DNA from: Takakia lepidozioides
Lineage: Eukaryota > Plantae > Bryophyta
Direction of reading: 5' to 3'
DNA length: 64,000 nt
Assembly: GCA_030704615.1 (NCBI GenBank)
Contig: CM060733.1
Span: 11,346,001-11,410,000 of the forward strand
Shown: in pieces, positions 4,354 through 34,625 of the stretch
How positions within the stretch are numbered: the first letter of the stretch is position 1
Layout of the letters: the number at the start of each line of letters is the position of its first letter
Program-made: the position numbers and the translations under genes
Notes under the pieces: model-generated
Database searches by the model: none
What the model was told of the DNA's origin: nothing
The model's input: the letters and a program-made list of their open reading frames with translations, nothing else

Positions 4354-7300
4354 AATGTGGTGAGGGCACCTTCTTCTTCGACCTATTTCAGCCTGTTTTA
4401 TCTCTCATGAGACTCGGCCCTGAGATCCTGTTATCAGAGTCGTCCCTAAATTCTGATGTTGAACTCTGCAAGGTAGCTTGTTGGTGGATCTATGGTGGTT
4501 TTGGAGTGATTTTAACATGTTACTGCCAATGTGGCAACAGGAAAGAATCGAAATGCTCACCTCAACGATGACTGCAGCTTCTGAAAGAGGATCAAGAGAG
4601 GGAGTCCACAATGCCTCTTCTGGCACTTCTGCGCATGTGAAGATGCTTTGTGAGGCAGGTAGACTGACATAGGCTCTCTGCATAGATAGCTGAAGGAGCA
4701 GGGATAGAGGGTGGGTCTAGATTCATCTAAGAGGGCCGGATTTCAAGCTCCAGATCACCTATGATTCCCTGTGGAAAGACAGGTACAAGAAACAGATGGT
4801 CAACTGCAACCCGCAGCGGCAGCGGTCAGACACTGCTAATGAAGGCACCTTCTTCAACACATTTCACCCTGTTTTTCCTCTTATCAAAGTCGGCCCTAAA
4901 TTTCCGTGTTGAATTCTGCAAGTTAGCTGGTTGAGTGAACCTTTGATAGTTCGGAGTGAATGACATGATACGGCCAATGTGACAACAGGAAAGTATCCAG
5001 AAACGGGTAACAGAGCTGAGGAGAAACTGTGGAATGAATACTTTTCCTGACCCCAGTTAATGGTGGGACAACTGAGGCAAAAAGGTGAATGCATGTTGGA
5101 TTACAGAGAGTAGCAGATGCAATTGAGCATACAAACTAGTGTGATAAGTTGAGTTGGGTGTTTCCTAGAACTTCAAGCTCCAAATTACCTATGATTCCCT
5201 GTGGATCAATAGCTACAAGAAACCTGCATCGGTAGATGGTCACCTAAAGGCAGCAGCTGCAGCGGCACCTTTGCTAAAATCAGGCACCTCAACCATGACC
5301 ACAGCTTCTGCAAGGGGATCAAGAGAGGGAGTCCACAATGCCTCTTCTGGCACTTCTGGGCATGTGAAGATGCTTTGTGCGGCAAGTAGTCTGATAGAGG
5401 CTCTACAGACTTTAAACAAAGGAGGCATTTCAGCAGATTCAGATACGTATGTCTGTCTCTTGCTTAAGTGCATCAAGATGGAAGGTCTGGAAGCTGGAAA
5501 GCAGATGCACACTCACATTATCCAAAGTGTATTCCCGCCAAGTGTTTTTCTACTCAACACCCTTGTCTACATGTATATTAAGTGCAGGAGCATCATGGAT
5601 GCTCACCAAGTGTTCAACAGAATGCCTCAACCATCTTTGATCACGTGGAACGCGATGCTTGCAGGGTATGCACAGTAGTGGCGTGGTATGGAGGCCTTGG
5701 AGACCTATGATCAAATGATGGGGGAAGGGGTGAAGCCCGACCACATCACGTTTTTGTGCATTTGCAATGCGTGTGCAAGCCTGGCAGCTATGGAAAAGGG
5801 TGAAGAGGTGCATGGCGACATTGTCAGAGCTGCAATTGTACCAAATGTCATTATGAACAATACCCTCGTGGACATGTATGAAGGGAATGTTCGACAATAT
5901 GGCTGAACAAGATGTGGTGTCGTGGAGTGCGATGATTGCAGGATATGCACAACAACGGCACGGGATGGAGGCTCTGGAACACGATGCTTGCAGGGTATGC
6001 ACAGCAGGGGCGCGGTATGGAGGCTTTGGAGACCTATGAGCAAAAGATGTGCGAAGGGGTGAAGCCTGACCACATCACATTTGTTTGTGATTGCAATGCG
6101 TGTGCAAGCCTGGGAGCTCTGGAAAATGGGAAAGACGTCCATGGTGACATCGTCAAAGCTGGAATTGCACCAGATTCATCCTGAACACTACGCTGGTGGA
6201 CATATGCCAAATGTGAGTGGATCGAGGATGCGAAGGGAGTTTTCAACACTGTGGCTGAACGAGATGTGGTGTCGTGGAACACGATGCTTGCAGGGTATGC
6301 ACAGCAGGGGCACGGGATGGAGGCTTTGGAGACCTATGAACAAATGATGGGGGAAGTGGTGAAGCCCGACCACATCACGTTTGTGTGCATTTGCAGTGCG
6401 TATGCAAGCCTGACAGCCCTGGAAAAGGGCATGGTTGCATCGCCAAAGCTGGAATTGTACCAGATGCGGTTCTGAACAATACCCTCGTGGACATGTATGC
6501 CAGATGTGGAATGCGATGATCGCAGGATATGCCCAGCATGTTGTCATAGGGAGGTCCTACAACTATTTGAAGGAATGCAAAAGAACGGCTTGAAGCTGGA
6601 CAACCTTTATATGTGTTCTCTCTGCATGCAGTCACACTGGCCTACTAAATGAAGGAAGACACTACTTCGATTCCCTGAGTCAAGATCATGGTATCACTCC
6701 GACAGTAAAGCACTTTGGCTGCATGGTGGACCTTCTTGGACGTGCGGGACAACTGCATGAGGCAGTGGACCCGATTAATAAAATGCCAATCAATCCAGAT
6801 GTTGTGGTGTGGAAGGCCTTGCTTGGTGCCTGCAGAATCCATGGCAATGTGGAGATGGCTAAACGTGTGGCAACATCTATCCTCAAGTAGGATGAACAGG
6901 ATGCCGCGACTTATGTGCTATTATCAAACATCTATGCTGCAGCTGGCAGGTGGGATGATACTGCACAAGTGAGAAGAATGATGAAGGTGAGAGGGGTTAA
7001 AAAGGAGCCAGGTCGCTGCTGCATTGAGGTTGACAACAGGGTGCACACTTTCGTTGTAGATGACAAGTTGCATCCCAGAATTAAGGAAATCCATGCTGAG
7101 CTACAAGATTGTCTGGGCAGATGAAGAAGGTGGGGTATGTGCCTGACACGCACTTTGTATTGCATGATGTGGGGAGGAGGAAAATGAATTTTCTCTTTGC
7201 CACCACAGTGAGAAGCTGGCCATTGGTTTTGGGCTGATCAGACGACCCCTAGGACGCCTCTCCGTCTCATCAAGAATCTTCGAGTGTGTGGTGACTGCCA

Positions 7301-7412
7301 TACCTCCACCAAATTCATCTCAAAGATTGTTGGCCGAGCAATTGTTGTACGGGACGCTAACCGCTTTCACCACTTTGAAGATGGGATTTGTTCTTGTGGT
7401 GATTACTGGTGA
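4354..7412 (+). pseudogene. PDF-motif/PLS-PPR-E-DYW editing factor pseudogene
   Basis: PDF halves: 4721-4825 IHLRGPDFKLQITYDSLW; 4989-5084 EEKLWNEYF..P..WWDN; 5170-5250 FKLQITYDSLWINSYKKPASVDG, which runs in frame into PPR ORF 5271..5678. P-L-S repeats follow, then E (LLSNIYAAAGRWDD), PG box (PGRCCIEVDNRVHTF), [22 protein letters not shown] and [14 protein letters not shown] ending at 7412. Many stops and frameshifts. Confidence 0.92.
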
Positions 7413-8269
7413 AAGGATGTTTTCTTGGAAAGATGTGAGTGTCTTGCTTCATTCATTGATCTGTGTAGCTACTTAGACCATCCACCATTTCCTGGGAGTA
7501 TTGACCATCATGGGGTCTACCCGGCATAGGTGGGAAGTCAACCCATAATTGCACTTGACTGAAAGGGTGTTTTTTGACTGATTCTGGTGACAGTGGATGG
7601 AACTCAGAGTGCTGTCCTAATTCTAGGTTTGGGTGGTGGAGCTTCTCCAAGGCTTGAAGATGAAAGTGAATACGAATTTTAATGAGCTTGATGAGAGGGG
7701 CAGCCCTGTGCACAAGTTTGTTCAACATCTTAAATTTGGACATTTGGACATGTTTGTTTGTTTATCGTGATGTGGCTTTGGATGGAGCCCTCGACAAACT
7801 TGCATGAATATTGTCAAAAGCTAGCCTTAACCCACCAAGATCCAATCCCATGGTGGCTGCTTGAAAGTTCATATAGTGATTGTAAGGGTATTTGGATATG
7901 TTGTTATTGATTGATGCGGCTTGCCTGCCTCACACTATTACATCGGTTTGTGCATGTTGGAGTTCAAGGTTGGGGGTAACTACTTGAGGTGCCAATCTCA
8001 AACAAGCCGAAAAACTGCTCCTCCTTGTGGATCTACTGGTCTTTCTCTTTATCTCTCTCTCTCTCTCTCTCTCTGGTCCAGCTTGAAATTTTAGTTTTTG
8101 TTCCTGCAGGTTCTGAAGCATTTGTTGATGCATAGTCCTCCAGAACAAGCTCTGATCCTGTTGCCTCGTTGCTGTCAAGTGTGAATGGATTTGAGGTGTC
8201 TCATCACGTGTGGAAGTGTCTGCATATTGGGCAGAAAAGGGGGTTCAACTCCCCCTCACTTCTTGGCAG

Positions 8270-9705
8270 GATTTACCAAGCATGGGTGTGGTAGGAATAC
8301 TTTGGAGACCTATGTGCAAATTCTGCGCGAAGGGGTGAAGCCCAACCACATCACATTTGTTTGTGTTTGCAATGCGTGTGCAAGCTCTGGAAAAGGGGAA
8401 AGAGGTCCTGCTGACATCGTCAAAGCTGGAATTGTACCAGATGTTATTCCGAACACTGCCCTGGTGGAAATGTATGTCGAATGTGCGTGCATCGAGGATC
8501 CCAAGGGAGTGCTTGAAAGTATGGCTGAATGAGATGTGGAGTGCGATGATTGCAGGCTATGCACAACAAGGATGCGGGATGGAGGCTTTGGAGACCTATG
8601 AGCAAGTGATGTGCGAAGGAGTGAAGCCCAATCACATAACGTTTGTTTTTGTTTGCAATGCATGTGCAAGCCTTGGAGCTCTGGAAAAAGGGAAAGAGGT
8701 CCATGGTGACATCGTCAAAGCTGGAAATGTACCAGATGTCATCCTGAACACTGCCCTGGTCGACATGTATGCACGGGATGGAGGCTTTGGAGACCTATGA
8801 GCAAATGTGCAAAGGGGGGAGGGGATTCCACGCCTGGATTGCCCTTGCATTCAGATGCTGCCCTCCGCAAGCCTGGCACCCTGGAAAAGGGCAAGAGGTG
8901 CATGGTTGCATCACCAAAATCTGCGAAGGGAGGGTTCGGCACTATGGCCGAACGTGATGTGGTGTCGTGGAGCATGATGCTTACAGGGTATGCACAGCAG
9001 GGGCCCGGGAGGAGGCTTTGGATACCTATGAGCAAATGATGGGGGAAGGGGTGAAGCCCGACCACATCAGGTTTGTGCATTTGCAGTGTGTGTGCAAGCC
9101 TGGCAGCCCTGGAAAAGGGCAGAGGGTTTATGGTTGCATCGCCAAAGCTGGAATTCTACCAGATGTGGTTCTGAACAAACCCTCGTGGACATGTATGCCA
9201 AATGTGGGTGCATCGAGGATGTGGAGGGAGTGTTTGACCATATGGCCAAACGAGTGTGGTAGGCTTGGAGTGCCATGATTGTAGGATATGCACAGCAGGG
9301 GCACGGGATGGAGGCTATGGAGACCTACAAGCAAATGATATGGGAAGGGGTGAAGCCTGACCACATCACGTGTGTTGGTGTTTGCAACGTGTGTGCAAGC
9401 CTCGTAGCCCTGGAGAAGGGCAGAGAGGTCCATAGTGACATTGTCAAAGCTGGAATTGTACCAGATGTCGTTCCAAACAGTGCCCTGGTGGATATGTATG
9501 CCAAATGTGGGTGCATTGAAGACGAGAAGGGAGTGTTTGACAATATGGCTAAACAAAATGTGGTGTCTTGGAGTGCCATGACAATAGCATGGGTGTGGGA
9601 TGGAGGCTATGGAGACCTATGAGCAAATGATGCAGGAAAGGGGTGAAGCCAAATCACATCATGTTCTTGTGATTGCAATGTGTGTGCGAGCCTGGCAGCC
9701 CTGGG
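8270..9705 (+). pseudogene. PLS-PPR array fragment (degenerate)
   Basis: Repeated EALETYEQM..EGVKPNHITF / IVPDVILNTALVDMY / DVVSWSAMIAGY motifs broken by frameshifts and stops; no N- or C-terminus. Confidence 0.9.
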
Positions 9706-9794
9706 CACAATTATTCATGTTGTAGACAACATAAAGTAGAGGGAGTGTTTGAGAGAGATTCATCATTGCATAATGTTACCCCGTTTGTGGCTCA

Positions 9795-10180
9795 GGGTAT
9801 ATATATGCTGGTGGTGGGATTTTCCCGACTCCCCAAATATCTGCCTAAGGCCGTCTGGCGCTACCGTATGTCTTACATAGGCTTCCATATGTATGCTCTA
9901 TCAGATCGACACCAACCGAAGCAAGTGGGAAGATTTGGCAGCTGTCTTTGGCATGGTCATTGGCTACAAACTTATCTTCTTCCTCATGATAAAGTTTACT
10001 GAGGATGTGAGCCCAATCCTCCGCTCGCTCCTTGCCAAGCCTGCCCAGGGCTGCCTGACACGGAAAAATTCAGCTGTCCAGAACACAATTCGACCCCTCT
10101 CTATGACACCATCCCCTGTCCATGATGCTGCTCCGCTGCGGTATTCCACAGGCAAGCAATTTGGTGCGTCCCCATGCTGA
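9795..10180 (+). pseudogene. ABCG (WBC/ABCG11-like) half-transporter C-terminal fragment
   Basis: GIYMLVVGFSRLPKYLPKAVWRYRMSYIGFHMYAL, then after a deletion QIDTNRSKWEDLAAVFGMVIGYKLIFFLMIKFTEDVSP. Confidence 0.78.
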
Positions 10181-10930: not shown

Positions 10931-11310
10931 GCTTTCCACCACTTTGAAGATGGGATTTGTTCTTGTGGTGATAGGATGTTTTCTTGGAAAGATGCTAGTG
11001 TCTGGTGACAATGGATGGAAATTAGAGTGCTGTCCTAATTCTGGGTTTGGGTGGTGGAGCTTCTTCAAAGCTTGAAGATGGAAGTGAATACGAATTTTAA
11101 TGAGCTTGATGAGAGGGGCAGCCCTGTACACGAGTTTGTTCAGCATCTTAAATTTAGACATGTTTGTTTGTTTCTCGTGGGGTGGCTTTGGATGGAGCCC
11201 TTGATGAACTTGCATGACTATTGTCAAAAGCTAGCCTTAACCCACCAAGATCCAATCCCATGGTGGATGCTTGAAAGTTCATATAGTGAATGTAAGAGTA
11301 TGCGGCTTGT
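10931..11310 (+). repeat. Duplicated DYW tail plus 3' flank (copy of about 7364-7435 and 7583-7925)
   Basis: [13 protein letters not shown] followed by a high-identity copy of the sequence downstream of the 7412 stop, with an internal deletion. Confidence 0.85.
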
Positions 11311-11665: not shown

Positions 11666-12031
11666 ACTTTCGCCAGTCATCACGGAGGAGAGCAACAATG
11701 ACATGACGGTAGAGAGTAGCATTCAGACAGTGGACCGGAATATTCATAGTACATTCTTTTCGCATTGAGCCCACTCAGGTAGATTCAGTCAAACCATGAC
11801 TGCAGAGATGCGACAAAGGGCAAAGTGTGAGAGTATTAATGCCTGCGGGATCGCAGTTCCGGCTGTTCCGGTCTGTATGTTGCTGTCTCTCAGCCAGAGT
11901 ACATCGCAAGGTGGGGGGGTGTGTTTGCAATCCTTTCGTATACATAGAAGGGAGGGAAGTGTGCGGGGAGGTTCAAGGACTGACGGGTTTGATCGTCAAT
12001 CCGGGGAAGGCTGTACACGTCGGGGCGAGAT

Positions 12032-15000
12032 ATGCCAAGTCTCGTCCACGACGTTATGGCTGCCACTCCCAATGTGGGTAGGGTGTTAGAGTCTCAGGAG
12101 CAAGAGACACCAGAAACTTTTGATGGGAGCAATCACACACTTATTCTTGGATGGAGCAACAAACTGGTACTGATTTCTCTCCCTGCATGCTTCACCCAGG
12201 GTTTATGACCGCAAGGTTACAAGGCAGTCCCTGACACGCACATACACTCTGATGACCGTATGTAGTGAACTTAGGGTGCCGATTGAGTATGATTCTCCCG
12301 CTTTCTCTCTGTTTTGATACACACAGAACCTCCCCCCAAGTTGATGCCATTAGACATCAAAATCTTGCACTAAACCTGAAGATGATATGGTAGAGTGTGG
12401 GCTATGCAGGTATAGGGTCGTATATCAACAGCCCAGCTCGCAATTTAATGAGCCCATCTGAAAATCTCTCCCCCATGAAATCTATGGCAGAGCACAAATT
12501 TGAGCGTCTAAATAAACTAAGGTTGTATTCATACTGTATGAGGTGGAAGCTCCCCCAGGTCAGGCTCAACAGGCTTTGTCGATAGTAATCAAAGTTGGTT
12601 CCTTTCCTCAAAATGTATGCTACTTGTACAGGCTGTTGCAGAAGGTTTAAGATAGAACCATGGTAGTAGTTTTGGTAGCCTCACTTGCCACTGAAGGTCA
12701 GATTCCATAAAGGCTGGAGCAAAGTTCTGACTGTGAGTAAGCCCCACAAATTCTATATTGAGGTTATCCAAAAAGCAGGAGGGCTCACACCAAGAGAAGC
12801 AAGGCTATTGCATGTCGGTGATCGAGACAGGAACATGGTTAACACACCGCTTGATGATAGGATTCGCCTCATTTGTACTGTGCAACAAGTGTGACACAGT
12901 GATCATTTGTTTTTCTCTTGCATGGTATGTAGGATATGAGGAGGATATGCTTTGTCTTTCAGAGGCTGTTCAGCATTGGCTGAGGCCTTTACTTATCAAG
13001 ACCAGAATGGCAGACTTAACTTTAGGATGCACTGTTTCTATTGAAGCCTAATTTGCTTTGTGTGTGATTAACACGTGTCCCATAAACTCACTTAAGCTTC
13101 CTTCGGATGCTAGAAAGTTCCCTCTTTCCTGCGGCCTCCTGTGATGTAGCAGTCCTCCCCCCCCCGCCCTTCTCTCTCCCTCTCTCTCTCCCCACCTGGT
13201 CCCATGGCCCTTGGTGGCCTTCTGCGGATGCTATTAAGGTTCTTTAACTCTACCTCCGCACAACCTATGAGACATCCCCTTGGTGTCTGTTGCTTAAGGA
13301 CATTTATTGATGTGGTGCAGAGTTCGCTTCTGACACAGCTGGCCATTGCAAATCAGAGCATGGGTGGGGGTGTGATTGTTATCCTGGCCAACCGCGAGAG
13401 GAAGCAGATGGAACTGGATATTGAAAGTGAAAAAATTGACTTGTTGGGGACAAAGGTCATATACAGCTGTGGCAGCCCCCTTGATGAGGCAGGTCTGCAG
13501 AAGGTGTGTGTCTGTATGAGGAGGGGCTGGGTTTTTGGGGGGGGAAAAGGGAGAGAGAATGTGCTCATAAGATGGGGCTTGCTGTAACCTTGTGGCCATA
13601 GACCCCCGCCTACTTTGGGCGAAACAGGAGGGAACAGACAATACCTTTGTGACAGGCTCACTCTAGTAGTAGGCCTTACCTTGATATAAACAAATTGGTC
13701 AGGCCTTCCAGATTTCCTCCTTCACAAGTCAATCTGCTGTGGAGATTGTACTCATAAGACGTTGTTTGCCGTAGCCTTGTGGCCAATCTGCTGTGGAGAG
13801 AGAGAGACAGATGTACTCATAAGACTTTGTTTGACCTTGTGGCCATAGACCCTGCGCCCAGTTTGGGCGGAACAAAAGGGACCAGGACCTTTGTGAGGGG
13901 CTCACAAAGAGAGAGAGATTGTACTCATAAGACAGTGTTTGCCGTAGCCTTGTGGCCATTGACCCCGCGCCCAGTTTGAACGGAACATATAGGGACAGAA
14001 ACTACCTTTGTCAGGGGCTGACACCGGTAGTATGATTTACCTTGGAATAAACAGTTGATCCGAGATTTCCAGATATCCTCCAGAAATCCCTTCACACAAG
14101 CATCAATCTAATGTGTGTGATTTGCCCAATAGCTAGACCCCAAAAGGGCCTGGGCTTTTGGCTCAGCCTCAAGATTTTCAAAGCTGTTAAACAGAGGTAC
14201 AGGCACAATTTCCTTGATGGAATTGAAGAGGGTGTCCCGTTGGTGAGAGTAGCCATGACAATGAATCAGGAAGTGAATATTGTCTTCAGGTTGCCCACAC
14301 AACGGGCACTTACAATCCCCCTTTCCTCTCTGCTACTGTTTGTTGTTCAAAGGTAGGCTACCCGCCCTGAGTTTGAATTTCAGTCTAGTGCCGAGGTGGG
14401 TAGACCCTTGAGGTCATCCATGATGGCGTCACCCATGTCACAGACTGGAAAGAGGTTCAGGGAAGTTTTCTGCCTAACTTCATTTTCTTCAGACAATTTC
14501 CTGGCAATAGACATGGCTTCGGAAACTTCAGCTTCTAAGCCGGATTTATCCAGCAGGGTCATGGCTAGTGGACTAAGATTCAGATCCTTGAAAATCTCTT
14601 CTACCCTTTTCCGCCAGGATTTAATCTGTTTGACAGGGCGGTCCTGCTTCCAAGATATAGAGTCGATTAACTTAGGATATCTGGTATTTAGCCATACGTT
14701 GCAGCTGACCCTACCATCTGATTTTGAATTCATCGCGTCGGGAGCTTAAGGGAGGAATGCCAAACCCACCCCGAACAGCCACATTAGCTGTTTTGGAGCA
14801 TGTTGACATGCACTCCTTGAGCACCCCGACTTGGATGGATTCAAGAGACTTAGCCTGGTTGGATTTATCAACCCATACAGCAGATGCATACTCCAAGGCC
14901 GGCCTGATAACGCGGCAAAGCATGGTTTTTTTGACTTCAGAGTTGATCCCTCTGCAGTGGAAAATTTTAATGAGACCCAGCGCTTTGCGTTTGCCAGATT

Positions 15001-18000
15001 GAACCACTCTTTCAATATGTGCTTCCCAATTACAGTTGGAGGAAAACTCAACGCCAAGATAGGTGTAGGAGGGGAGAACAGGGATCTCTTGGCTTCCCCA
15101 CTGAAACTTGAGATCGCCTCCTCCTTCCCCCCAGTCGTTGAATGCCACCACTGCGCATTTACTGACATTGGCCTCTACCCCCCAAAGATCAAAGTATCTC
15201 TTCGCGCAATCTATCAGTCCCTGGAGGTTGGAAGGAGTCTCCCCTATGCCTGCGAAGTCATCCGAACATAAGGGCTGGTATGGTGGCATCACCCACCCTT
15301 AACCCAAATCCCTCACTTTCCACATCCTCCAGTAGTTGATTGATGAAAACATTGAAGAGCAGAGGGGAGAGGGTACATCCTTGAGCTACACCTTGGTCTA
15401 TGTCAAAGAAATTAGACTTCTGTCCATTTACAGTGACACAGCTTTTAGTGTGAGCATACAAGTTATGGACCACTCTCCACATCTTTCCCTTGATCCCGGA
15501 AGACCAGAGTCGGAGCCATAGACCGTCTCTCCACACAGTGTCATAGGCCTTTTTGACATCCAGGAAAAAGACAAAAGTAGGTTTCCCTTCTTTTTTCCTT
15601 CCCTGGATAATCTGGCTGAGTGTGAAGATATGATCCACGCAACCCCTGTTTCACCGAAAGCCAGCTTGGCCTTCATGGAAACAACCTCTGGACTCCAGAT
15701 CAACCTCGAGACGAGTACTTATAACTCTGCAGAATATCTTGCCAACTGCATTAAGAAGCGTGTTGCCCCGATAGTTACCCGGCTCTTCTCTGTCACCTTT
15801 CTTATATAAATTGACAATGACCCCCTGCCGCCAACGAAAGGAATTTCAGTCCTCCACATAAGGTTAAAGAGAAGAACAAGGGCCTCTATCATAGGGTCAC
15901 CACCATGCTTGATAAGCTCATTGACAATGCCATCAGGGCCACCAGCTTTGTATCCGTTTAGGTGCTCAATTGCTTCCGCAATCTCAGAGGAACTAATGGG
16001 AGCGTTATAACCCTTTGAAATATACTCCAGTTCATCAGGGCTGTCTTGAATCATAGACACAGTTCTTTCTACTGTGTCATTCCATTCTTCAGAAAACCCC
16101 TCGCTGCTAGAACTAGAATTTCTGCCAAGTGTACTGTAGTGGGTTTCAAAGGTGTTGACAATGTCAGCCGTTGAAGTCACCACTGCACCCTTAGGGGTCC
16201 TCAGCGCTTGTACTTGCTGACAATTTTTCGGCTTGTACGGACGTTGAAGGGCCAAGCAGAATTTCTTGTCATTACCACCATGGTGGTTTGAGTTTATTTC
16301 CCCGTATAATTTATCCCAATATAGTTTCTTCTGAGACCTTACAAGCTGATTGATATCTTTGCGGAGCTGGTAGTACTTAACCCAAAGGTCATTATTGACT
16401 TTCATTCTGCAGCACTCTTTATAGAGGGCTCGTCTCTCGGCAATCTTGTGTTTGATCTCATTGGTCCACCAATTAACAGCTCTACCGCAGACAATTAGTT
16501 TCCTCCCAATGATCTTTTCAGCCACAGAAGAGACGAAACTCTCCCAAGAGTCCACCGCACTTTCGACTTCATTTCTTGCATTGCCAGCGCGAGATTGAAG
16601 GTCTTGGAGCGAATGGACAAAGTTGGGCAGAGCCTCTCGCAAGGCCTGGACATACTCAGCCTTGACCTCTTCATTTCGGAATTTTTCAATGCGCCACTTC
16701 TGGATCGAACGTTTCACAGATCTCTTGGTGTTGGGGAAACACCTTTTGATCTCAGTCCAAACCAGAAAGTGGTCAGAGGTACCAATATTAGTTCTGTCAA
16801 TTAATACATTGGCACACTGGGGAAACAGATTCTTGTCCACTATGATATAATCCACAATGGATCGTTCCCCAGTTTGGGCTTTCTCACGAGTCCACTGCAT
16901 TGGGTCACCTTTTGACCTATTGTTCAGGGTCGAAAGCTGAAGCTCTTCCAAACAGTTAATTAACCGTCTTCCCTTAGAGTTCAGCTCGTCCTCACCAAAA
17001 GGTCCGATGATATCATCCTGGTGAAGACCTTTACCCACCCGGGCATTGAAGTCACCCAATAAGACCACCTGACCCTTGGCAAGGAACTTAGCACAGTCCA
17101 GCTTTACGTCTTCGAAGGCTTTATCTGCGTCAGCACTAAGGGTCCCTCTGTGGGCATGTAAACACATCCCACAAAGAGGTCCTTCCTACTCACGCTGCCC
17201 TTCAATTTCAGTTTCAGCCAGATACTGTGCTCATACCGCAAATCCTTGTTGATAATTTCACAATTGTCACACAAGAAATCTCAGACAAAGAAGCCAACAC
17301 CTTTTTGCCCACGCTTGGGAGAGGTCACCGTAAGCGCACACATCTTGCCAAACCAACGGTAGCCGTTGACATCTCCAACCAGTTTGTCCGAAGTTTCCCA
17401 TGTCTCTTGCCCAGCACAGATATGAATACCATTTGACTGAAGAACTTGTCCCACTTCAAATTGTTTCCTTTGGTTAGTCAACCCCGAGAAGCTGAAAGTG
17501 CCCAGCCGCAAGCCAGCCTTTTGCATATGGATTGTTTGCCGTCTAGGGAGCCTATGATTGCTCCTGAACGACCAACCGCTCTGCAAAGGGGGATCAGTTG
17601 CCGCATGTATTTTGGGCGTCTAGAGTAAACTTTATAAGGATTGGCAAACCATGCAGAGTGCCAAATCCTTCAGGCGAAGATTTAATTCTTCTAGAGTAAA
17701 CCTTAAGGATTGGCGCAAACCATTCAGAGTGCCAAATCCTTCAGGCGAAGATTTAATTCTTCTAGAGTAAACCTTAAGGATTGGCAATCCATTCAGAGTG
17801 CCAAATCCTTCAGGTTCCTGACGCTCAGCCTCAGCACACATAGGGCCAACTAACCTGTCTGGCTGCTTGGTATCAATCTCTTCCAGGGCTTCAAACCGGT
17901 TAGAAACTTTCAAGTTGAAGTCCCCACAGTTGACTGTCTTCCTAGAGCCCCTCATTGAATCACCAATGTCTAAGACCGCCCTCCAACCAGTCAAGTGGCG

Positions 18001-21000
18001 AATTTCTTTGAAGCTGATTTGATGTGGGATTCTATTTGTAGCAGATTTAGGCAATGAAACCTTCAAAGTACCTCTGTTATCCAATCTTGAGATGGTGCCA
18101 TTAGCCACATAATCCAAGCCTAAGCTGGAGCAGATAGTTTTAAAGGACACATCGTCCATCCTGGGATTCACCCCAAAAACTACACATGAAGCTCTAGATT
18201 TGGCATAAGTAACCATTTCCCAGGAATCACCCTGAGTAGTGTTATTATCGGAGTGGCCAAATATTTTTTCTGTATACGCAGGCTGTAAGTTTAAGCACAA
18301 GGACCAACCCTAGCCCAAGTGCCGAGCATGCTCCATTTTGGGCGGAGGGGCTGCCCCCAAGCGGTAGGGGTCCGCTTGTTACCATCCAGAGATCACCACT
18401 CCAAAGGAGCTGCAGGGAATGGCCCGCGTAGACATGTTCTAAAGAGGGAGAGGCCCCAGACTCTCCAACTAAATCCAATGTACTACCTTACCCAAAGCAG
18501 AGTGCTTCAGGTCAAAACAAACCAAGACACGAGGTCGCAAGGCCGGCATTTAGTCACAGAGACATTTATGTACTCCCATTTCAAGTCCACCCAATGTCGA
18601 TAGGCTTCCTAGAGGCAGGGAGGTGACACAAAGAGAGAGAGAGAGAGGGAGAGAGAGAGAGTAATTGGCTATGACACATCCTTGTGGGCATGTACTGTGA
18701 ATGACAATCTGGGATTGAGTGTCGATGTATGGGCGTGGTAGGTAGGCCTCCAAGTGCCTTTGACTATCATAGCTGAGACTGTCAAGGATAAGGAATTTCT
18801 GAAAAGACGTGTATCTACCTCTGATCGCAGTAAAGTGAGCCAAGACATGTGCATGCATGGGGAAATATCCATTCCATTTGAGATAACTGAGCCCATCCAC
18901 TTTTTCCAAGTGTTAGCAAGCTCTTTGGCAACCCAGCCCTCTGGTGATGGATGTCGAAAACAAGGCAAACAGATGGTAAAGGCTTTAAAAAAATGGCTGT
19001 CCCTGAGTTCAATGCAAGTGTTTCAATACAACTTGATATCTCGGCCCTCAGGTCACTGCACATGTATCCTCCAGCGCAGAGATAGAGCTCAGAGACAGAT
19101 TCATTTATTGTTGAGAAGAATCCACGTTGGACTGTTGACTGTAAGGCCATTATCCTGGTGCATGGAACAAGAGATACAATCAGGAATGTAACTATACTCT
19201 GTGTTGGGGTTTTGCAGGTCTCGGTGTCTGAGGCTCGCTCTATAATTGTCCTTGCAGAGTCTGATGATGCAGATGAGGTAAGATGGCTTTCCACTGCTTG
19301 CTGATTAGATATTTTCATAGGAAGTTGAGCTGGTAGGAGCCAGCCTCACGGGTGGAGAAGAAAAAGAAGAAAATGTGGCCTCATCTATGACGCGAAAGAA
19401 TAAAGTTTATTATGTTCACTGCGATCCTGAAAGGCAGAGCAAGAGCAAGAGAGAGACACTAGCGGAGCCATTTCAAAGAGAATCAGACAAACACATGATG
19501 AAAACTGATACATAGGGGTGTCTGGCAGAGTGATGAGCTGGCAAGGAAGATTGTACAAACTATATTAACAAGTGGGGATCAAGGGATTTGGGGTCATATC
19601 GTGGTGGAGCTCATCGACAAGGAGAATGAAGCTTGGGTGAAGCAAGCAGGTGGCGAGCTTGTAGAGACAGTTGTGGCGCACGATGTGATAGACCGCCTCA
19701 TGGTCCAATTTGCACGCCAACCTGGTCTTGCTCAGGTCCAATTCAGACTTTGCAGATGTGTAATTGGGGCAACCTGACTCATGCATGGCTAACATTCTCA
19801 CAGGAGCTCAGGTTAAGAAGCCGGGGAATGGTTGTAGCCATAGATTTCAGTCTTTCTCTTTTGGTTCATTAGCCTTGGCTGTTCTTCCTTCTTTGTTTGT
19901 TTGTTCCACGTTTTTGACTGATAAGCTTTGGGCTTCTTGTCGATGTCAGGAAGTTTAGTTCCTTTTTCATTTCCCTTGCGAGTGTTAATATTCTTTCAGT
20001 GAATGCAGGTATGGCAGGATATCCTGGGATTTGACAATGCCGAGTTCTATGTGAAGAGGTGGCCAGAGTTAGACGGTCTTCGCTTTGGAGATGTGTTGAT
20101 CAGCTTTCCAGATGCAATACCTTGTGGCGTCAAAGTGATGGCCAATGATGGCAAGATTGTGTTGAATCCTGATGATGAGTACATACTCTCTGAGGGGGAT
20201 GAGCTGCTGGTTGTCGCTGAGGATGATGACTCGTATGCCCCTTCTGGGTCCTTACCAGAAGTACGTTCTGTTTCTACTAGAAAATTTGGCTGATTTCCGT
20301 CTGCATCAGAGCCCTTTTATCGTCGGGTTGACTGTGAATGGGTTTTCAAAGCTTCGACAAGAGAAGGCATATTGTTGATGAGATGTTAGTTTGTTTTTCA
20401 CACACAAGGTGCCTTTTATGATGCACCATGCTCACATTTTCTTCCCACTCTCCTGTTTCTGCTGTAGATCCGGAAAAGCTCACTACCTAAGAGTGGAAGC
20501 AATTTGAAGGTTCCAAAGAAAGTTTTGTTCTGTGGATGGCGTCGCGACATGGATGACATGATCACGGTAGGTCCTTGTGAGATGTAGCTCTTGGGCTTTG
20601 GAGGGTATACATTTAAAATACAATCACTATTGCTGCAAGTTGGAGAGTAGAGGAAGGATGGGGTGTGGGCTCTGTTGTGTCAATCTCTAGTCAGATGGGG
20701 TTCTCTGCTTATGAAGTTTTGTGGCTGAGGAGCAAAGTATGCATGGAGATTGCTTTATGTGTTCGACAATTGGGGTCTTTTCTGGATCTGTACCCAGAAA
20801 TTTGGGCTTTATTCTGACATCATACATTGTGGGGGGACTTTGTTCTTGTGCAGGTGTTGGAGTCATCATTAGCCCCAGATTCAGAGCTCTGGATATTCAG
20901 TGAGGTGCCTGAACACGAAAGGGAAAAGAGACTAATGGAGAAAGGCGTCCATGCAAGGGAGTTCAAAAATGTGAAGCTCATCCACTGCGAGGGAAATGCT

Positions 21001-22286
21001 GTCAACAAAAAACATCTTGAACACCTACCCCTCGAAACATTTGATTCGGTGGGTGGCTTATACATTGATTAGTTGTCCCTCCTCGCTTAATTTTCTGACA
21101 TGTTTACTTCAAACATTCTGGAGCTGTAGGCAAAGAGTAAAAATGTCTGTAGTCTTCCAGTGAGCATCTACCATAGAAGTTGTAGCTCATTTGAAAAGTA
21201 CCTACCGGAAGCGCCTTTAATGTTTTCTAGAGAGACTCTCTCACTCTCACCCTCTGGAGGATCTCAAGTGTGATCATGATTGACTGATAAGTAAGTGTTG
21301 TTCTGGCCCTGCAGATTTTGGTTGTTATGGACGGAGATGCTCCAATGGATGCTGAACACTCCCCCCTCGCAACTTTGCTGTTAATCCGTAGTATTCAGGT
21401 ACTTTTGAGAGTTCAATACTTCTCTCCTTCTGCCTTGGAAGGGACTTAACCTTCGTATCCTTGCTACTCTCCATGTTTGTTAGATTTTCTTGGTAAGAAG
21501 TCCAGAGTTCGTAGGCCCTGATTTTCCTCCTGGTAAGAACAGGAGGAGGATTTTGTGCGCTTCTACCTTTTTTTTATCAACCCTCCATTCTGACAAAGGT
21601 GAGGTTCTTGTGGTTGTTTTGTGCTGTAGTCAAAGCGAATGCCCCACAGCGAAGCCAAGGCCATTCAATTACGTCAAGGGGGCTCCACGAAAAGCACCTG
21701 GATCCACGAAATACTGCACTGTCCGAAACAGTCAATAATAATCAATGAAATTCTTGATGCCGGGACAAAAGATCTCCTTCCTGAAGCAGATTATCCGCTT
21801 ATGCATAAGACAGATGATGTGATGGTGAGCATGGCACTGGCTATGGTGGCAGAAGACAAGCAAATCAATGGTGTGCTGGATGAGCTTTTTGCAGATGAGG
21901 TAAGCTCTTCTCCGAACACTTTTAACCCTTGGAGTTCAATCTTCTAATTCTAGACCCACTGTGGTACCTTAGGGCATAGATTTTAAGAGATTGCCTGTCA
22001 TACTAAAGCTATTCGATCTGAGAGGTTCTAAGATTGTGAACTTATTTAGATGATTATTTGGTGTGTGGGGCAGGGGAATGAAATTTACATTCGGCCAGCT
22101 GATATGTATCTAGATGAAGACAAAGAGGAGCTAAGCTTCTATGAGCTCATGCTACGTGCTCGTCAGAGACAAGAGATCATCATAGGCTACCAATCAGATC
22201 GAGCAGTCATCAACCCACCCCAGAAAGAGGTCCAGAAAAACTGGTCCATGGATGACAGCTTCATTGTTCTTGCACAAAAAGCATGA
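12032..22286 (+). CDS. CASTOR/POLLUX (DMI1)-like protein, RCK gating-ring domains only (about 557-565 aa, 10 exons)
   Basis: Exons: 12032 or 12056-12166 (NHTLILGWSNKL); 13321-13503 (SLLTQLAIANQSMGGG...GSPL); 19218-19277 (VSVSEARSIIVLA); 19529-19735 (GHIVVEL...ETVVAHDVI...ARQPGLAQ); 20009-20260 (WQDILGFDNAEFYVKRWP...AEDDDSYAP); 20468-20566 (FCGWRRDMDDMI); 20854-21048 (LPLETFDS); 21315-21398 (LATLLLIR); 21630-21899 (SMALAMVAEDKQINGVLDELFA); 22074-22286 (GNEIYIRPA...stop). All introns are GT-AG, phase 0, and the spliced frame has no internal stops. Confidence 0.9.
13550..13902 (-). mobile_element. Three stacked 5'-truncated 3'-end copies of the adjacent LINE family
   Basis: The motif TG(T/C)ACTCATAAGA...CCTTGTGGCCA recurs at about 13560, 13746 and 13812, each preceded by GA repeats. 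Insert 13746-13783 is flanked by a 16-bp direct repeat CAATCTGCTGTGGAGA (13730-13745 and 13784-13799). Confidence 0.8.
13919..18626 (-). mobile_element. Full-length non-LTR retrotransposon (LINE; APE endonuclease + RT + C-terminal Cys/His motif, RTE-X-like) in intron 2 of the CASTOR-like gene
   Basis: ORF1 17632..18300. ORF2 is in pieces: GIHICAGQETW, LLGDFNARVG, SIVDYII, SDHFLV; FLDVKKAYDTV, GVAQGCTLSPLLF, YTYLGV; CGQPEDNIHFLIHC. 16-bp TSD CACAAAGAGAGAGAGA at 13903-13918 and 18627-18642. Confidence 0.93.
17619..17813. repeat. About 70-bp tandem repeat (about 2.8 copies) at the LINE ORF1/ORF2 junction
   Basis: Unit TCTAGAGTAAACCTTAAGGATTGGC..AACCATTCAGAGTGCCAAATCCTTCAGGCGAAGATTTAATTCT repeated. 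Confidence 0.9.
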
Positions 22287-24968: not shown

Positions 24969-27390
24969 TTATGCAGCACGGATATTCGATGTCAGCACAT
25001 TAGTGGGAGCCTCCTGTAGATTCCACGTGAGAAGGGATTTTGCGATGCGTTCTGCTACCTCTACATTTGAATGGATTCTGCAGGCACCAAGCAAGGCCAT
25101 CCACACTGCAGTACCTGGTTCAATTGGCATTTTGTTAATGAACTCCTCTGCATCATCCACATGCCCTGCGCGGCCGAAAAGGTCCACCAGGCAGCCAAAA
25201 TGCTCCTCTGTAGGCATGAAACCATGATCTTGACTCATGGAATCAAAGTAGTGACAGCCTTCATCTACCAGGCCCATATGGCTGCATGCAGAGAAAACTC
25301 CTAGAAAGGTGATACTGTTTGGCTTCAAGCCATGTTGTTGCATTTGTTCAAATAGTTTGAGGGCCTCCCTACCACACCCATGCCGAGCATATCCTGCAAT
25401 CATCACATTCCAAGAGACCACATCAGATTCAGCCATATTGTCAAACATTTGGCGTGCTTCATTCATGTTCCCGCATTTGGCATGCATGTTCACAAGGGCA
25501 GTCTCCAGAATTGTATCTGGCACAATTTGAGCTTTGATGAGATCAGCATGGACCTCTTTGCCCTTTTCCAGTGCTGTCAGGCTGGCACAAGCGTTGAGAA
25601 TGCAAATGAATGTAACTTTGTCCGGCGTCACCCCTTCCTGTACCATTTGCTCATACATCTCCAAAGCCTCCACACCACACCCATATTGAGCATATCCTGC
25701 GATCATTGTACTCCATGAGATGACATCTCGATTAGACATCTTGTCAAACACTTGCCGCGCATCCTTCACACTCCCACATTTGGCATACATGTTAACAAGG
25801 GTATTCTCCAACTTGATATGTGACCCAATTCCAGCTTTGATGATGTAACCATGGACTTCTTTGCCCTTTTCGAGGGCTGCCAGACTGGCACACCCATTGA
25901 GAACAGAAGTGAATGTGACCTCGTTGGGTGTCACTCCACTCTGTATCATTTGCTCATAGATCTCATAAGCCTCCATACCATACCCCTGCTGAGCATATCC
26001 TGCGATCATTGCACTCCATGAGACCACATCGCGTTGAGCCATATTATCAAACACTTGGTGCGCATCCTTCATGCTTCCGCATTTGGCATACATGTCGATA
26101 AGGACAGTCTCCAGAATGATATCTAGGGGGATTCTAGCTTTGATGATGTCAGCATGCACATCTTTGCCCTTTTCCAGGGCTGCCATCCTGACACATGCAT
26201 CAAGAATGCAAAGGAACGTGGCTTTGTCTGGCTTCACTGCTTCGTGTTTCATTTGCTCATAGATGTTGAAAGCAGCCCTACCGCACTCCTGCTGAGCATA
26301 TGCTGCGATCATCACATTCCAAGCAACCACATCTCGTTGAGCCATATTGTCAAACACTTCACGAGCATCCTTCATGTTTCCACATTTGGCATACATGGCA
26401 GCAAGGGAAGTCTCAAGCATGATATCTGGTTCAATACTAGCTTTGATGATGTCAGCATGGACCTCTTCACCCTTTTGCAGGGCTCCTGAGCTGGCACACG
26501 CCTTGAGAGCGCAAATGAATGTAACCTTGTTGGGCATCACACCTTCCCGTATCGTCTGCTGGTAGATCTCCAAAGCCTCCCTATTGCACCCATGCTTCAC
26601 ATATCCTGCCATCATCATAGTCCATGTATACACATCTCTTTTAGGCATTTTGTCAAGTACTAGGCGTGCATCCACCACACTTCCACACTTGGCATACATG
26701 TTGACAAGCATATTGAGTAGGAAGATGTCTGCCTTGAATCCACTCTGAATGATGTGAGCGTGTACTTGCTTTCCCATTTCAAGGTTTTCAATTCTGATGC
26801 ACCCCCGCAGGAGACAAACATAAGTATTAGTATCTGCTGAAATCCCTTGGGTGTGCAAAATATGCAGGGCCTTGGTCAGTTCTCCTGCCTTGCATAGTGA
26901 CATTATATCACCATATAGGGCTTGACCATGTATCATGGCAGTTAGCGCTGCTTCCACCCAAGGAGGGTTTGATTGACTCTGAATCCAAAGGGCCTCGTTT
27001 GTGTGCCTATGTCTGAAGTCTGGTGATCTTGGACTTATCTGCAAGAACAAGTAGTGGGCAGCTAAGCAGCCTTAGTCAAACCACAGCCTCTCTTTGACCA
27101 GGCTACAACAAGCAGAGCTCCAACCATCTTCCAAATAACAGGGAACAACCTACTGACAGCAACAGTAATCACCACATTTTTATGATGAAGAAAAAATTAG
27201 TCATTAATTAAGGGCATGGAATACCATCTGTCCACAAAACATCATCATGTGGGCTGACTTACAAACCCTCCTGACAAATTTTATCACTCTGTGAATGAAG
27301 ATAGCCTGACCTTATCAAACCTGTTATCCCACCACTGTAAAGGATCTGAAAAGAACTCCTGCCAGAGTTGTTCACTGGTCTTTTCTTCAC
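24969..27390 (-). CDS. PDF-motif + PLS-class PPR protein (17 PPR motifs + E1 + truncated E2); upstream exons unresolved
   Basis: Exon 27390-27311 (EKTSEQLWQEFFSDPLQWWDNRFDK, AG/GT bounded) splices in frame to exon 27038-24969 (ISPRSPDFRHRHTNEALWIQSQSNPPWV, then an uninterrupted L-S-P array, P2-L2-S2 and E1 AVWMALLGACRIH). Confidence 0.85.
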
Positions 27391-30115: not shown

Positions 30116-30170
30116 TTGTCTCTCCCATCAAGGCTCCAACCATTCTCCCGGGATTCTTCTTTTCCTATGG

Positions 30171-33100
30171 TTGTCAAGGAGTACAACGATCAAGGAGTAC
30201 AATGATGACTCTACTAAGCTAACTGATGGAGCTTTGTATCTGTCGATCTCTCCATCAGCATTAAGTTTAAATTTATACACCCATTTGCAACTTATACATT
30301 TGCGATTTGGAGGTAAAAACTGTAACTCCCAAGTCTCGTTTTCCATGAGAGACTCATATTCTTCGATCATTGCTTGCTGCCACTGTGCAGTTTCATGACA
30401 ACGTACAACCTCGTTGTAACTTGATAGCTCTTCTGGCAACGTTGGCTCTTCATGATTTGTAGCAAAATAAGCCTCGTGCAGTCCTGGATAAAACCAATCT
30501 CCATACATCGTTGGTGGCCTTCGTATTCTTGGCTCCAGAGTTGGAGCTACCTCTTGGTCACTTGGTTCTGCTCATCTGTTGGTCACTGGAGATTGCAAAA
30601 CACTGGTGCTTATGGGATGACTCACAAGCAAATCTTGGAGCTCCTGATCAAGCGCTGGTTCCACTTCCACTGCTCCTACTTGCAACATGTCTCCCACTGG
30701 CGCTGCATCTCCCACTGACGCGACATCTCTCACTGACGTGACACCTCCCACTGGCGCCAACACCACTCCTGTTGGCTCTGCATGCAAGTTCTCAGTATCC
30801 TCAATCATGAATGACGTTGCATGGCTGGCTGCCCATGCATCACGTTCAGAGAATATTATTGTCCTCATTGAAAAGAACATCGCGGCTCTCCTCAATAGAG
30901 CGCTTATCATTCAACCAGATCCTGTAGGCCTTACTTGTGAAACTATACCCCATGAATACTCCTTTCTGGCTCTTTGCATCGAGCTTCGTTCTCATGTCTT
31001 TTGGCATATGTACGTATGCATCGCAACCGAACACTCTTATATGTGCAACGGCTTCTCCTTTGTCCAAATCTCAGACGGTGTCTTGACAGGTATCATATGG
31101 GTATACATACGGTTCAGAGTATATACGGCTGTTTGTGATGCTTCCCCCCAAAATCGCGGATGGACATTACTTGCGTAGATCATACTTCGTACCATTTCAA
31201 CGATAGTTCTGTTTCCCGTTCACAGGCTCCATTTTGTTCTGGAGTATAGCCTGCCGTCATCTCATGTTTGTCTGTCTCAAGCTTCATCTGTACTGTGTAT
31301 TGCTTGAAGCTTGGAAGCGCTTGTGACTTCTTGGCAATATGCTGAGTGGTCATCTTTGAAGACGATAAAATATTGCGCACCACCCACGGTCTTCACGCTA
31401 AAAGGCCCAACAAGATCGGTATGAACCAGGTGCCCAACATCTGCTGCTCTGGCTCTGATTTCATTCTTTGGAAAGGGGCTACGGTGATGCTTGCCAAAAG
31501 CACATCCCTCACAAAAAGACGGTTCTTTCCTGTTGGTCAATACCAAGCCTTCCACCATGTTTTCCGCTGCCATATGTTGGATAGATTGGCAGTTTACATG
31601 ACCCAATCTCATATGCCATAACCCTAGGCTTTTCTTGGCTTCAGTCTGACTTTCTCCGGCAAATGGTCCAACCAAACAAGCAACGGCACTACTTCTCTTG
31701 ATTTTGATATAGAGCTGCCAAAGATCATCGGTGATCCCTTCCATAACGACCACGCCACGATGAATGAGCTTTAACCCAGAGTTGTTTCGAATTACCCTAG
31801 TGCCCATTTTCACTGCCCCAAGTTCTGAAAATAAGTTCCGGCCTAAACCAGGAACATACAACACATTTGTCATCTTGCTTTCATACCAGACACCGTTTGC
31901 AAGTACCTCGATGTCAATTGTTCCCACGCCTTGTACCGCAAGTGTGATACCTCCCACTCCTTCTACAATCTCCTTGCGACCAGTGATATCCTCGAAATGT
32001 GTAAACCAGTCTCGCTTGCCTGTCATGTGTTGTGTACATCCAGAGTCAGTGATCCAGATGCTCTGTATGTCTCGTTGCTTTACTTGATCCACTGTGGCCA
32101 TCCAGGCCTTGTAGGTTGATATAGCTGGCTTGGTCTCATCTTTCTCGCCTTTTGTTTTGGCCTCTCCTTTCGCCTTGGGTTCATTTTGACATTCTCTAGC
32201 CCAATGACCCGTCTCTCCACAGTTAAAGCACGTGGTGCTTTTCTTCTCCTTTTGGATGGCTTCTCCCCGAGCCTTCCTCTGCTCCGGAGTCAACGAGGGG
32301 CGGCTTGCTGGTAAGCTAGACGACTGCCCTTCTTTCTTTACAACAAAGGCTTTGTTGGTTTTCGACTCTTCTATTTCGTTTTCCTGCCCTTCCTCCATTA
32401 GCAATCGAGAGGTAAGCAACTCGAGATTTTTGTTGGGACCATCTGGAACACTATCCCAGGCCGAACGAAAATGCTTGAGGTTTGACGATAGGTTACATAG
32501 GACCTTGGCAATCATTGAGGAATCGCTGAAGCTAGCATCTCCCAGTAGGTTCGCAAATGAGTTAAGATCATCTCAATCTTCCCAAGAAAATCAGCGATGG
32601 TATCTTCGTCTTTCATGCTGCACTTATAGAACTGTTCTTGCAAGCGATGCACATTATTTGTTGATCGCTGCTCGTTCACGGCACTGAGCTTGTTCCAGAA
32701 TGACCCTGAGGTCTCGCACCCTATTAAGATTCTTCAACTACTTATGATCGACAGCTTGGCAAAGAATACTAATGGCCTGATTATCTTTCTTCTTCCATGC
32801 GGCAATGGACACATCCTCTCATGCCTTGAGTACGTCATCTGCATTAGCTGTCCGTGTAGGCATTGGCTCTGCACCCGAGACAATGTCCACTAGCTCTTTT
32901 CCCCGAAAAATAGCTCACATTTGGTATTTCCACGCCTTCGCCATTGAATCTCTCAATGTTGCTCAGATCTGCCTTTGAAGAGTCACTCGCCATGACTACT
33001 AACACTTGCTTAAAGAAAAAAAAAACAGATAGGCTGGAAATCAGAAGTTTCAAAGTAGACTCACAAAACAGCATAGAAAAAAAAAACTGTGAGCTTCAAT

Positions 33101-33567: not shown

Positions 33568-34625
33568 AGAAGATTGAAGACTGTCCAGATATGTCGTAGC
33601 AAAAATCTCGTCCAAAATGCTGTTCGCTGCGATGGCTACACCTGTGCTTGGTGTTGAGAGCTGCCTGCTGCTAATTCCAACCCATCCGAGGTGCAAGTTC
33701 AATGTGTTTCGGAGACTCTGGGGGATCCCAAAGGTATTACAAACCTCACCTACGGCCAAAGTTACACGGTTTATGTCGAATATTACCAACACCATACATC
33801 TTGCGGTCGTGCTATTTTGTGGACGAGCATAAAGCTCATTTCCTGTTGTGGCATCACTCCATCACTTCTATCACTCCATCACTCTTATCGTGAAACCCAC
33901 CCGCACAACGCCACATGCTAGTCTAGCAGATCTTTCTGAAAGGGTGGCAAAATTAAGGCAAAAGGCCGTCAAATCGAATGGCTCAGTTGTAACTGCAAAT
34001 CGGCCCTCAAATTTCAGCGCAAACCTTAGTCTAATCCCCTTGTCGGAACCAGATTCAGAACCCAGCTGGGTTAACAAACCTCCCAAGATACCTTTTCGGG
34101 GGTCTAACCTGACGAGTCCCAGCGATTCGGACCTGGAATTGTAAAATCTACGCACTAGTCTGATAGTGCATGCGGCATACATCTCAGCAGTATGGGTCGC
34201 AGAGGTCTGGTTGCTGATAGTATATAGAGATATACCGTAGTATGTGCACCATGAAGACAGATATGAATCGCAAATTACAGTGAACTCTTTGAATCAAAAC
34301 ACGCAATGAATTAATTTGTGTTTGTCTATATCGTGTACAAAATGAGTGCAGCTGCACATTGTCCAAATATCCTAAACGGCAGCCCTCTACAACCCTCACG
34401 AGCTCTTCATGTGCATTTACATGCAGCTTCTCGAAAATACAGCTAAACCCTGAGCTTAGAAGTCTGTTTTCCAAATAACACAGGTACGTGTGCTAGCTAA
34501 ATGGCGCCCACTGCTGATCATCTCTGTGCACAAAATGCGTCGATCTGAGTTGAAACTATTTACACGCGGTATATAATATACACAGGCAATATCCAAAGAG
34601 CTGCATACGGTTGTGAGGCGGCGAT

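Follow-up and report, generated by a model that had tools for sequence, protein, structure and literature searches.

Can the gating ring of the CASTOR/POLLUX/DMI1 channels persist in plants as a gene of its own, without the pore? This question is raised by a gene on the forward strand of a 64,000-nucleotide stretch of DNA from Takakia lepidozioides (GCA_030704615.1, contig CM060733.1, positions 11,346,001 to 11,410,000), the whole of which is hereafter called the window. CASTOR/POLLUX/DMI1 proteins are a core component of the nuclear Ca2+-spiking machinery in root symbioses, where the gating ring decides the firing of DMI1-CNGC15. A gene for the RCK domains only is a natural separation-of-function variant, a ring without a pore, and it would allow two questions to be asked, namely which tasks the ring performs alone, such as sensing Ca2+ or regulating a partner, and by what route part of a channel turned soluble. 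The locus probably belongs, as an intact gene, to a pore-less branch of the CASTOR/POLLUX/DMI1 family that has kept the RCK part only, with a soluble Ca2+-binding gating-ring protein as its product. A previous sequence-only reading of the window had already described an intact gene that encodes nothing but the RCK gating ring, and that description is upheld by membership of a moss RCK-only clade, by a ten-exon layout like that of Sphagnum, and by constraint.

The window gene has similarity to CASTOR/POLLUX/DMI1 and extends over 12032-22286 on the plus strand, its boundaries having been set by codon reading at each junction. The ten open exons spanning both RCK domains that had been reported are present, separated by nine introns, all of them in phase 0 and of the GT...AG type, with the 18 splice-site dinucleotides intact and lengths, from intron 1 to intron 9, of 1154, 5714, 251, 273, 207, 287, 266, 231, and 174 nt. 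The gene model comprises 565 codons without an internal stop, or 557 from the second of two candidate start codons, ATG 12032 and ATG 12056, the latter in a better (ATGG) context. Likewise, the short hydrophilic leader ahead of the first RCK strand and the TGA closing the frame at 11990 are both found where they had been described. The phase-0 GT donor of exon 1 falls at the same point as the end of the canonical exon 3 and of Sphagnum exon 1. Searches, phylogenetic placement, diagnostic sites, and the comparison of nonsynonymous and synonymous differences (pN and pS) were all made on one exon at a time, with nothing but the resulting statistics added up across exons. In the following lines, ligand positions were taken from Kim et al. 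2019 (PMC6697748) in LjCASTOR numbering, which was checked against the 6O6J and 7VM8 chains.

11990-11992, plus strand: in-frame TGA closing the frame, 13 codons 5' of the first ATG
12032-12166, plus strand: exon 1, with the start codon(s), a 33-residue hydrophilic acidic leader, and the first RCK1 strand (NHTLILGW...)
12167-13320, plus strand: intron 1, 1154 nt, GT-AG, phase 0
13321-13503, plus strand: exon 2, RCK1 N-lobe, with Ca(III) ligand positions A342/S345 (kept) and interface positions D418/K420 (G, Q)
13504-19217, plus strand: intron 2, 5714 nt, containing a long interspersed nuclear element (LINE)
19218-19277, plus strand: exon 3, 20 codons
19529-19735, plus strand: exon 4, Ca(I)/Mg site with D442 kept and Glu for D444; H463 also kept; ENEAWVKQAG, identical in Sphagnum
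20009-20260, plus strand: exon 5, Castor_Poll_mid, with the ligands E493 of Ca(II) and D553/D554 of Ca(III) unchanged, and a one-residue insertion
20468-20566, plus strand: exon 6, linker and start of RCK2, R589/R590 kept
20854-21048, plus strand: exon 7, RCK2 N-lobe
21315-21398, plus strand: exon 8, 28 codons, with His at the S708 position and R718 kept; weak alone, collinear
21630-21899, plus strand: exon 9, RCK2, with Asn at the S760 position (in SIIINEILD) and T767 kept
22074-22283, plus strand: exon 10, a tblastn match, followed by the stop codon TGA at 22284-22286

The first codons of intron 2, if read in frame (13504-13530, VCVCMRRG), loosely resemble the opening codons of exon 3 (VSVSEARS), so loosely spaced an imitation that tblastn alignments run on across this point; the likeness is probably due to chance or to the GT-rich donor region.

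Homology of the window gene to CASTOR/POLLUX/DMI1 is far above chance. Exon 5 matches the PDB chains of DMI1 (7VM8) with E=1.7e-42 and of CASTOR (6O6J/6O7C) with E=1.2e-39, as well as the Pfam family Castor_Poll_mid (PF06241) at 5.4e-33. Exons 4, 2, 6, and 9 match PDB chains at 1.9e-18, 1e-14, 3.5e-8, and 4.2e-17, respectively, and tblastn recovers exons 7 and 10 at E values from 1e-17 to 1e-20. Exons 1, 3, and 8 are short and weak singly (exon 8 has no PDB match at E<=1), yet they are collinear and contain conserved motifs. The whole series is collinear with 7VM8 and 6O6J from chain residue ~19 to the C-terminus and encodes the tandem RCK1-RCK2 soluble part with Castor_Poll_mid. Full-length proteins are ~62% identical to the window gene product whatever the land plant, the two Diphasiastrum channels, a liverwort, and Ginkgo included, so that the divergence described earlier as strong is better called moderate; identity to the moss RCK-only proteins is 50-60%. 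A recent partial duplicate of a lycophyte channel was considered and discarded, given this ~62% identity to both Diphasiastrum proteins and a placement 128 log-likelihood (lnL) units worse.

The relationship with the channels extends to the gene structure. The canonical Diphasiastrum gene (L008) covers 34 kb, with introns of up to ~15 kb, and has one exon that codes for pore, inner helix, and first RCK strand together. Its exon ends are those of the window gene from the end of its exon 3 (...DKL) onward, and its homologue of window intron 2 is ~9.1 kb long. Window exon 1 corresponds to the last dozen codons of the canonical pore exon, placed behind a new leader. Thus, the shared exon ends, together with an exon 1 cut inside the pore exon, point to a DNA-level copy broken in the pore exon and not to a retrocopy.

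Coding for the N-terminal region, the transmembrane (TM) helices, or the filter was not found on either strand of the whole 64 kb by tblastn with full-length channels of angiosperms, Ginkgo, Selaginella, Marchantia, and Diphasiastrum (P0010, P0018, P0390, P0391, and others; at least six queries). These channels align to the window only from the NHTLILGW strand on, leaving their first 417-640 residues unmatched. Moreover, no exon contains a TM-grade segment, since the 19-residue Kyte-Doolittle mean reaches at most 1.35 against a threshold of 1.6, and the open reading frames (ORFs) in the 2 kb upstream of the gene have no Pfam match. The TM domain with pore helix and ADSGNHA-type filter by which a full-length channel is recognized is therefore lacking in the window, in agreement with the earlier remark that no TM or pore-filter coding lay upstream. 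A likeness of the leader to the end of the inner helix and the linker, or to the moss leaders, was noticed by eye and dropped, because local alignment scores were at the level of shuffled sequences.

The window gene is not alone in this architecture. A profile-free search with exon 5 returned a protein of 558 aa without TM segments and without a filter (P0002), whose ORF lies without introns on a contig of environmental origin, and a search with this protein led in turn to a set of RCK-only proteins of 557-588 aa. The search of related genomes that the sequence-only reading had proposed was thus successful in Physcomitrium, Ceratodon, and three Sphagnum species, with the following members.

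Physcomitrium patens: XP_024364493.1 (UniProt A9RNF4), 558 aa, named 'probable ion channel CASTOR'
Ceratodon purpureus: KAG0585160.1 and KAG0553345.1, two loci
Sphagnum magellanicum: KAH9572415.1, 568 aa
Sphagnum jensenii and Sphagnum troendelagicum: 587-588 aa

The names of these moss proteins are automatic only, including 'RCK N-terminal domain-containing protein' and, for one member named by the JGI pipeline, 'Trk K+ transport system NAD-binding subunit'. The window model, with 565 codons or 557 from the second Met, has the features common to the moss set, namely a length of ~560 aa, a start 20-45 residues before the first strand, and no TM segment. The Sphagnum gene (L005) has the same ten-exon layout as the window gene and near-equal exon sizes, its exon 1 comprising the leader and the first strand and ending in phase 0 after ...KL. 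Two assembled Sphagnum transcripts (L006 and L007) have all nine introns removed, and 5' of the ATG they follow the genomic sequence without a break over 156 and 810 nt, with in-frame stops in these stretches. An RCK-only mRNA therefore does exist in Sphagnum, with a first exon equivalent to window exon 1. In addition, the exact P. patens protein is present on 272 contigs (2-5 kb) of sequencing-run assemblies, which implies a P. patens RCK-only mRNA starting at the leader exon.

Nine introns at canonical positions are kept in the window gene and in Sphagnum (L005 10001-14185), unlike in Bryopsida, where the RCK-only coding sequence is intronless both in P. patens and on an environmental Ceratodon-like contig (L001 10001-11677, L002 10001-11677). 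Retrocopying of an RCK-only mRNA would leave a coding sequence without introns, and the Bryopsida copy thus has the look of a retrogene. An AlphaFold2 model of the Sphagnum member, built on a 17-row alignment, reached a mean predicted local distance difference test score (pLDDT) of 60.5 and a predicted template modelling score (pTM) of 0.36, values too low for a fold search, with confidence only in the two Rossmann lobes and a leader below 30. Among the best 120 relatives of Selaginella DMI1 there is no moss full-length DMI1, and liverwort channels rank sixth and seventh, which hints that the RCK-only gene is all that remains of DMI1 in mosses. Nuclear Ca2+ spiking that arises spontaneously has been reported from Physcomitrium protonemata (PMC8819110). 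No description of a pore-less CASTOR/DMI1 homologue was found in the literature.

The phylogenetic position of the window gene was assessed in an alignment of 9 moss RCK-only, 20 full-length, and 5 outgroup sequences, with each window exon entered as a separate fragment. In the backbone maximum-likelihood tree, the moss RCK-only proteins form a clade with 100% support and a long stem among the land-plant channels. When tried on all 65 branches, each of the ten exons fitted best on the stem of this clade or inside it. The summed lnL under LG+G4 was 112.6 better than on the best outside branch and 127.8 better than as sister to the Diphasiastrum channels, and under the mixture model LG+C10+G4, with the fragments laddered on one branch, the moss stem was still ahead by 78.6 and 83.8, respectively. 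Rare characters agree with this placement. The window gene shares with the moss clade a one-residue insertion after DDDSY.P (APSxSLPE); both have lost ADLKK, invariant in all full-length and outgroup rows, and both have IRSIQ where the channels have IRDIQ. The ENEAWVKQAG of the window is that of Sphagnum and carries the ENE.W motif that marks the clade, the channels having DNEPLVKLVG. Of 45 diagnostic columns, 18 in the window gene agree with the mosses and 17 with the channels, and the other 10 agree with neither, a mixture expected of a lineage sister to the clade and separated from it early along the stem. The window gene thus places as sister to the moss RCK-only clade, with an early divergence along its stem. 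Takakia is sister to all other mosses, and the gene-tree position fits equally a PPR-rich early-diverging moss such as Takakia or a vascular-plant copy of an ancient paralogue.

With regard to functional residues, the window gene keeps all five Ca2+ ligands examined (S345, D442, E493, D553, and D554 of LjCASTOR), while the Mg2+ ligand D444 is replaced by Glu, as in mosses. The inter-lobe residues H463 and R589/R590 are also kept, whereas mosses carry Lys for the former (Bryopsida alone) and Gln for the latter. [quoted passage not shown] The first of these changes are common to mosses and the window gene, but mosses retain Ser at S760, and Asn occurs only in the window. Disruption of this network makes Medicago DMI1 auto-active (PMC9407390), and S760N is the gain-of-function spd1 allele of the same channel, which causes spontaneous nuclear Ca2+ oscillations.

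The sequence-only reading had suggested selection from the survival of the frame, and the substitution pattern agrees. The window gene keeps 187 of the 201 columns (93%) that are invariant in the family, or nearly so in both groups, and the pN, summed over exons, is 0.21-0.25, far below a saturated pS of 0.69-0.85. The sole finite estimate of the ratio of nonsynonymous to synonymous substitution rates (dN/dS) for the window gene is ~0.16, obtained against Sphagnum, the ratio against other partners being non-computable because synonymous sites are saturated; between two Bryopsida RCK-only genes it is 0.105. Over the greater part of its history, then, purifying selection has acted on the lineage.

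Several points weigh against an intact gene for a free Ca2+-binding ring. The transcription of the window gene in this species is something that we infer, and its neighbourhood is rich in transposons and PPR pseudogene pieces. The window gene and the moss clade are both long branches, so that attraction between them is possible, though the mixture model and the rare shared characters agree with the placement. The pN/pS comparison averages a very long history and is blind to a recent loss of function, and the changed interface residues could equally mean a loss of ring assembly. The leader scores no better than shuffles in local alignment, either with moss leaders or with the canonical linker, and AG dinucleotides occur after the in-frame stop and ahead of the first homologous residues, where an upstream exon could be spliced in as far as the sequence is concerned.

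It might be argued that what is left here is a relic of an RCK-only (or channel) gene, truncated at its 5' end and transcriptionally silent, its frame still open and its function gone, as could be expected among PPR pseudogene arrays, repeats, and a LINE in intron 2, and as the alteration of several residues conserved in all full-length channels could suggest. However, these residues are altered across the whole RCK-only clade, which is itself at a dN/dS of ~0.1 in mosses, and the 565 codons and all splice-site dinucleotides are intact, with the great majority of invariant columns kept and pN remaining low under a saturated pS. With an intact frame and such constraint, any silencing would have to be recent, and a relic appears improbable.

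The two other rivals look for missing exons upstream. The RCK exons would be the 3' part of a full-length channel gene if its pore and TM exons lay more than 12 kb upstream, outside the window, or had diverged too far to be recognized; the size of the canonical Diphasiastrum gene and its long introns would allow for such distances, and acceptor-like AGs do occur 5' of the homology. Nevertheless, pore and first strand share one exon in the canonical gene, whereas here a TGA stands 46 codons before the strand with nothing pore-like ahead of it, the upstream 7 kb hold unrelated coding fragments on the same strand, and all other clade members are RCK-only, with transcript proof in Sphagnum, so a hidden channel is very improbable. 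The least probable alternative is that an upstream exon adds to the RCK part an N-terminal module of other origin, for example a targeting peptide or another membrane anchor, the product being pore-less and yet not a free ring. Candidate acceptors at 12010-12098 and hydrophobic ORF fragments 2 kb upstream on the same strand (9673-10180) could serve such a fusion, but these fragments have no Pfam support and end in stops, no such exon occurs in the Sphagnum transcripts, and the moss proteins all start with a short leader.

An intact RCK-only gene could have arisen when an ancestral DNA-level copy kept the last nine-and-a-bit exons of a channel gene, the break falling inside the exon for pore and inner helix, and when the truncated copy gained its own start codon and short acidic leader. 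Its product would be a soluble protein of ~560 residues with tandem RCK1-RCK2, folding as a gating-ring subunit of CASTOR, presumably made in this species. As the Ca2+-ligand residues are kept, the product is taken to bind Ca2+, and it would probably form a free ring-like oligomer. The residues that hold the resting state (MtDMI1 D418, K420, E458, S708, and S760) are replaced, which could either release the ring from this state or alter its assembly; given this replacement, the most likely mode of action would be that of a soluble Ca2+ sensor or regulatory module on a partner. Candidates for the latter are a CNGC15-type channel or full-length DMI1, if present in this genome, and the free RCK-only protein would itself be unable to conduct ions.

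A more far-reaching proposal is that the RCK-only lineage is older than the split between mosses and vascular plants and exists here beside full-length DMI1/POLLUX, where a free, 'activated-like' Ca2+-binding ring (S760 Asn; D418, K420, and E458 lost) would tune or replace the gating ring in the DMI1-CNGC15 oscillator, and that in mosses it would be a remnant of oscillator regulation. This proposal is unlikely.

In prokaryotes, soluble RCK partners such as the MthK M107 product and KtrA/TrkA are pore-less RCK polypeptides that act by ligand-driven changes of a ring; they have one RCK per chain and form octamers or dock on a separate membrane protein. The sequence-only reading had compared the window gene with MthK, and the resemblance is a functional one only, both involving a pore-less RCK chain. 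It does not extend to the tandem RCKs of the window product, as in Slo/BK and CASTOR, nor to the leader, which has no significant likeness to the post-pore linker. Furthermore, the window gene derives from a eukaryotic channel gene, whereas the soluble RCK of MthK comes from an internal start in the same mRNA.

The moss RCK-only proteins are the closest known counterparts, with a short hydrophilic leader, RCK1 and RCK2, no TM segment, and Ca2+ ligands kept, and they differ from the window gene in the intronless coding sequence of Bryopsida and at H463, R589/R590, and S760, where Asn sets the window apart. The full-length nuclear-envelope channels CASTOR, POLLUX, and DMI1 (SYM8), represented by LjCASTOR 6O6J/6O7A/6O7C and MtDMI1 7VM8, have a soluble ring that is homologous throughout, with the same introns and Ca2+ ligands; they also have an N-terminal region, TM helices, a pore helix, and the ADSGNHA filter, all of them missing from the window gene, in which the interface network is replaced. 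The plastid POLLUX-like proteins PEC1/PEC2 are full channels with transit peptides and a C-terminal CASTOR/POLLUX domain that form a separate clade (PMC8644588). The main tree of that study took only homologues of at least 700 aa, outside which the ~560-aa proteins fall, and size filters of this kind drop the RCK-only proteins from family trees (PMC8644588).

The RCK-only variant is already in databases under automatic names and seems to be uncharacterised, and the window gene is a new, deep-branching member of this family. Calls of 'DMI1 present' in mosses need to be read again, as pore-less proteins have been auto-named ion channels. If the source were a lycophyte, the family would be as old as land plants; with an early-diverging moss as the source, the window gene would be a deep-branching member that still has its introns and the most channel-like residues.

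The surroundings of the gene are rich in repeats, mobile-element pieces, and PPR sequences. The '5-kb intronic LINE stack' of the earlier description proved to be a single degenerate minus-strand LINE, at ~14.4-18.3 kb within the 5714-nt intron 2. A direct repeat brackets PPR-like and other coding fragments, and its second copy ends ~730 bp before the RCK start codon; it may be a pair of long terminal repeats or a local duplication. The two hydrophobic ORFs upstream of the gene resembled the C-terminal helices of an ABCG half-transporter, a likeness that was abandoned for want of Pfam support. A 181-aa ORF adjoining the three-copy repeat has no Pfam match, and an Rfam scan of the window gave none either. 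Eleven window ORFs, looked up by exact sequence, had no entry in the protein collection. The GC content of the window is 46.9%, with 0.49 at third codon positions (GC3), against 41.8% and 0.36 at a Diphasiastrum locus, and there are no repeats in common. The run of long ORFs at 47609-51615 may be an unclassified mobile element or a gene. The features are as follows.

370-897, minus strand: retropepsin-like ORF at the window start
5200-9700, plus strand, and 39400-42800, both strands: degenerate PPR arrays with a period of ~303 nt and frame-shifted ORFs
7583-7891 and 11001-11301: direct repeat of ~310 nt, 93% identity, copies 3.4 kb apart
9673-10180, plus strand: two overlapping ORFs with hydrophobic stretches, ~2 kb 5' of the RCK gene
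~14380-18300 (limits approximate), minus strand: degenerate LINE in intron 2, with Exo_endo_phos_2 and RVT_1, its reverse transcriptase split over at least 3 ORFs
24969-27050, minus strand: intact PPR ORF of 693 aa, best protein matches to Diphasiastrum complanatum PPRs at 50-52% identity
31277-32515 and 30128-30508, both minus strand: Copia-type pieces with zinc knuckle, Pol beta-barrel, and gag-pre-integrase domains
34568-35003, 36498-36942, and 44817-45300: three copies of a ~440-nt repeat, two direct and one inverted, 95-96% identity, each with a 122-aa ORF on one strand
47609-51615, plus strand: long ORFs of 322, 173, 359, and 447 aa that contain Gln/Thr-rich repeats and match no Pfam family
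37239-37862, minus strand: 207-aa ORF containing LRRNT_2 and LRR repeats, part of an LRR protein (a fragment or one exon)

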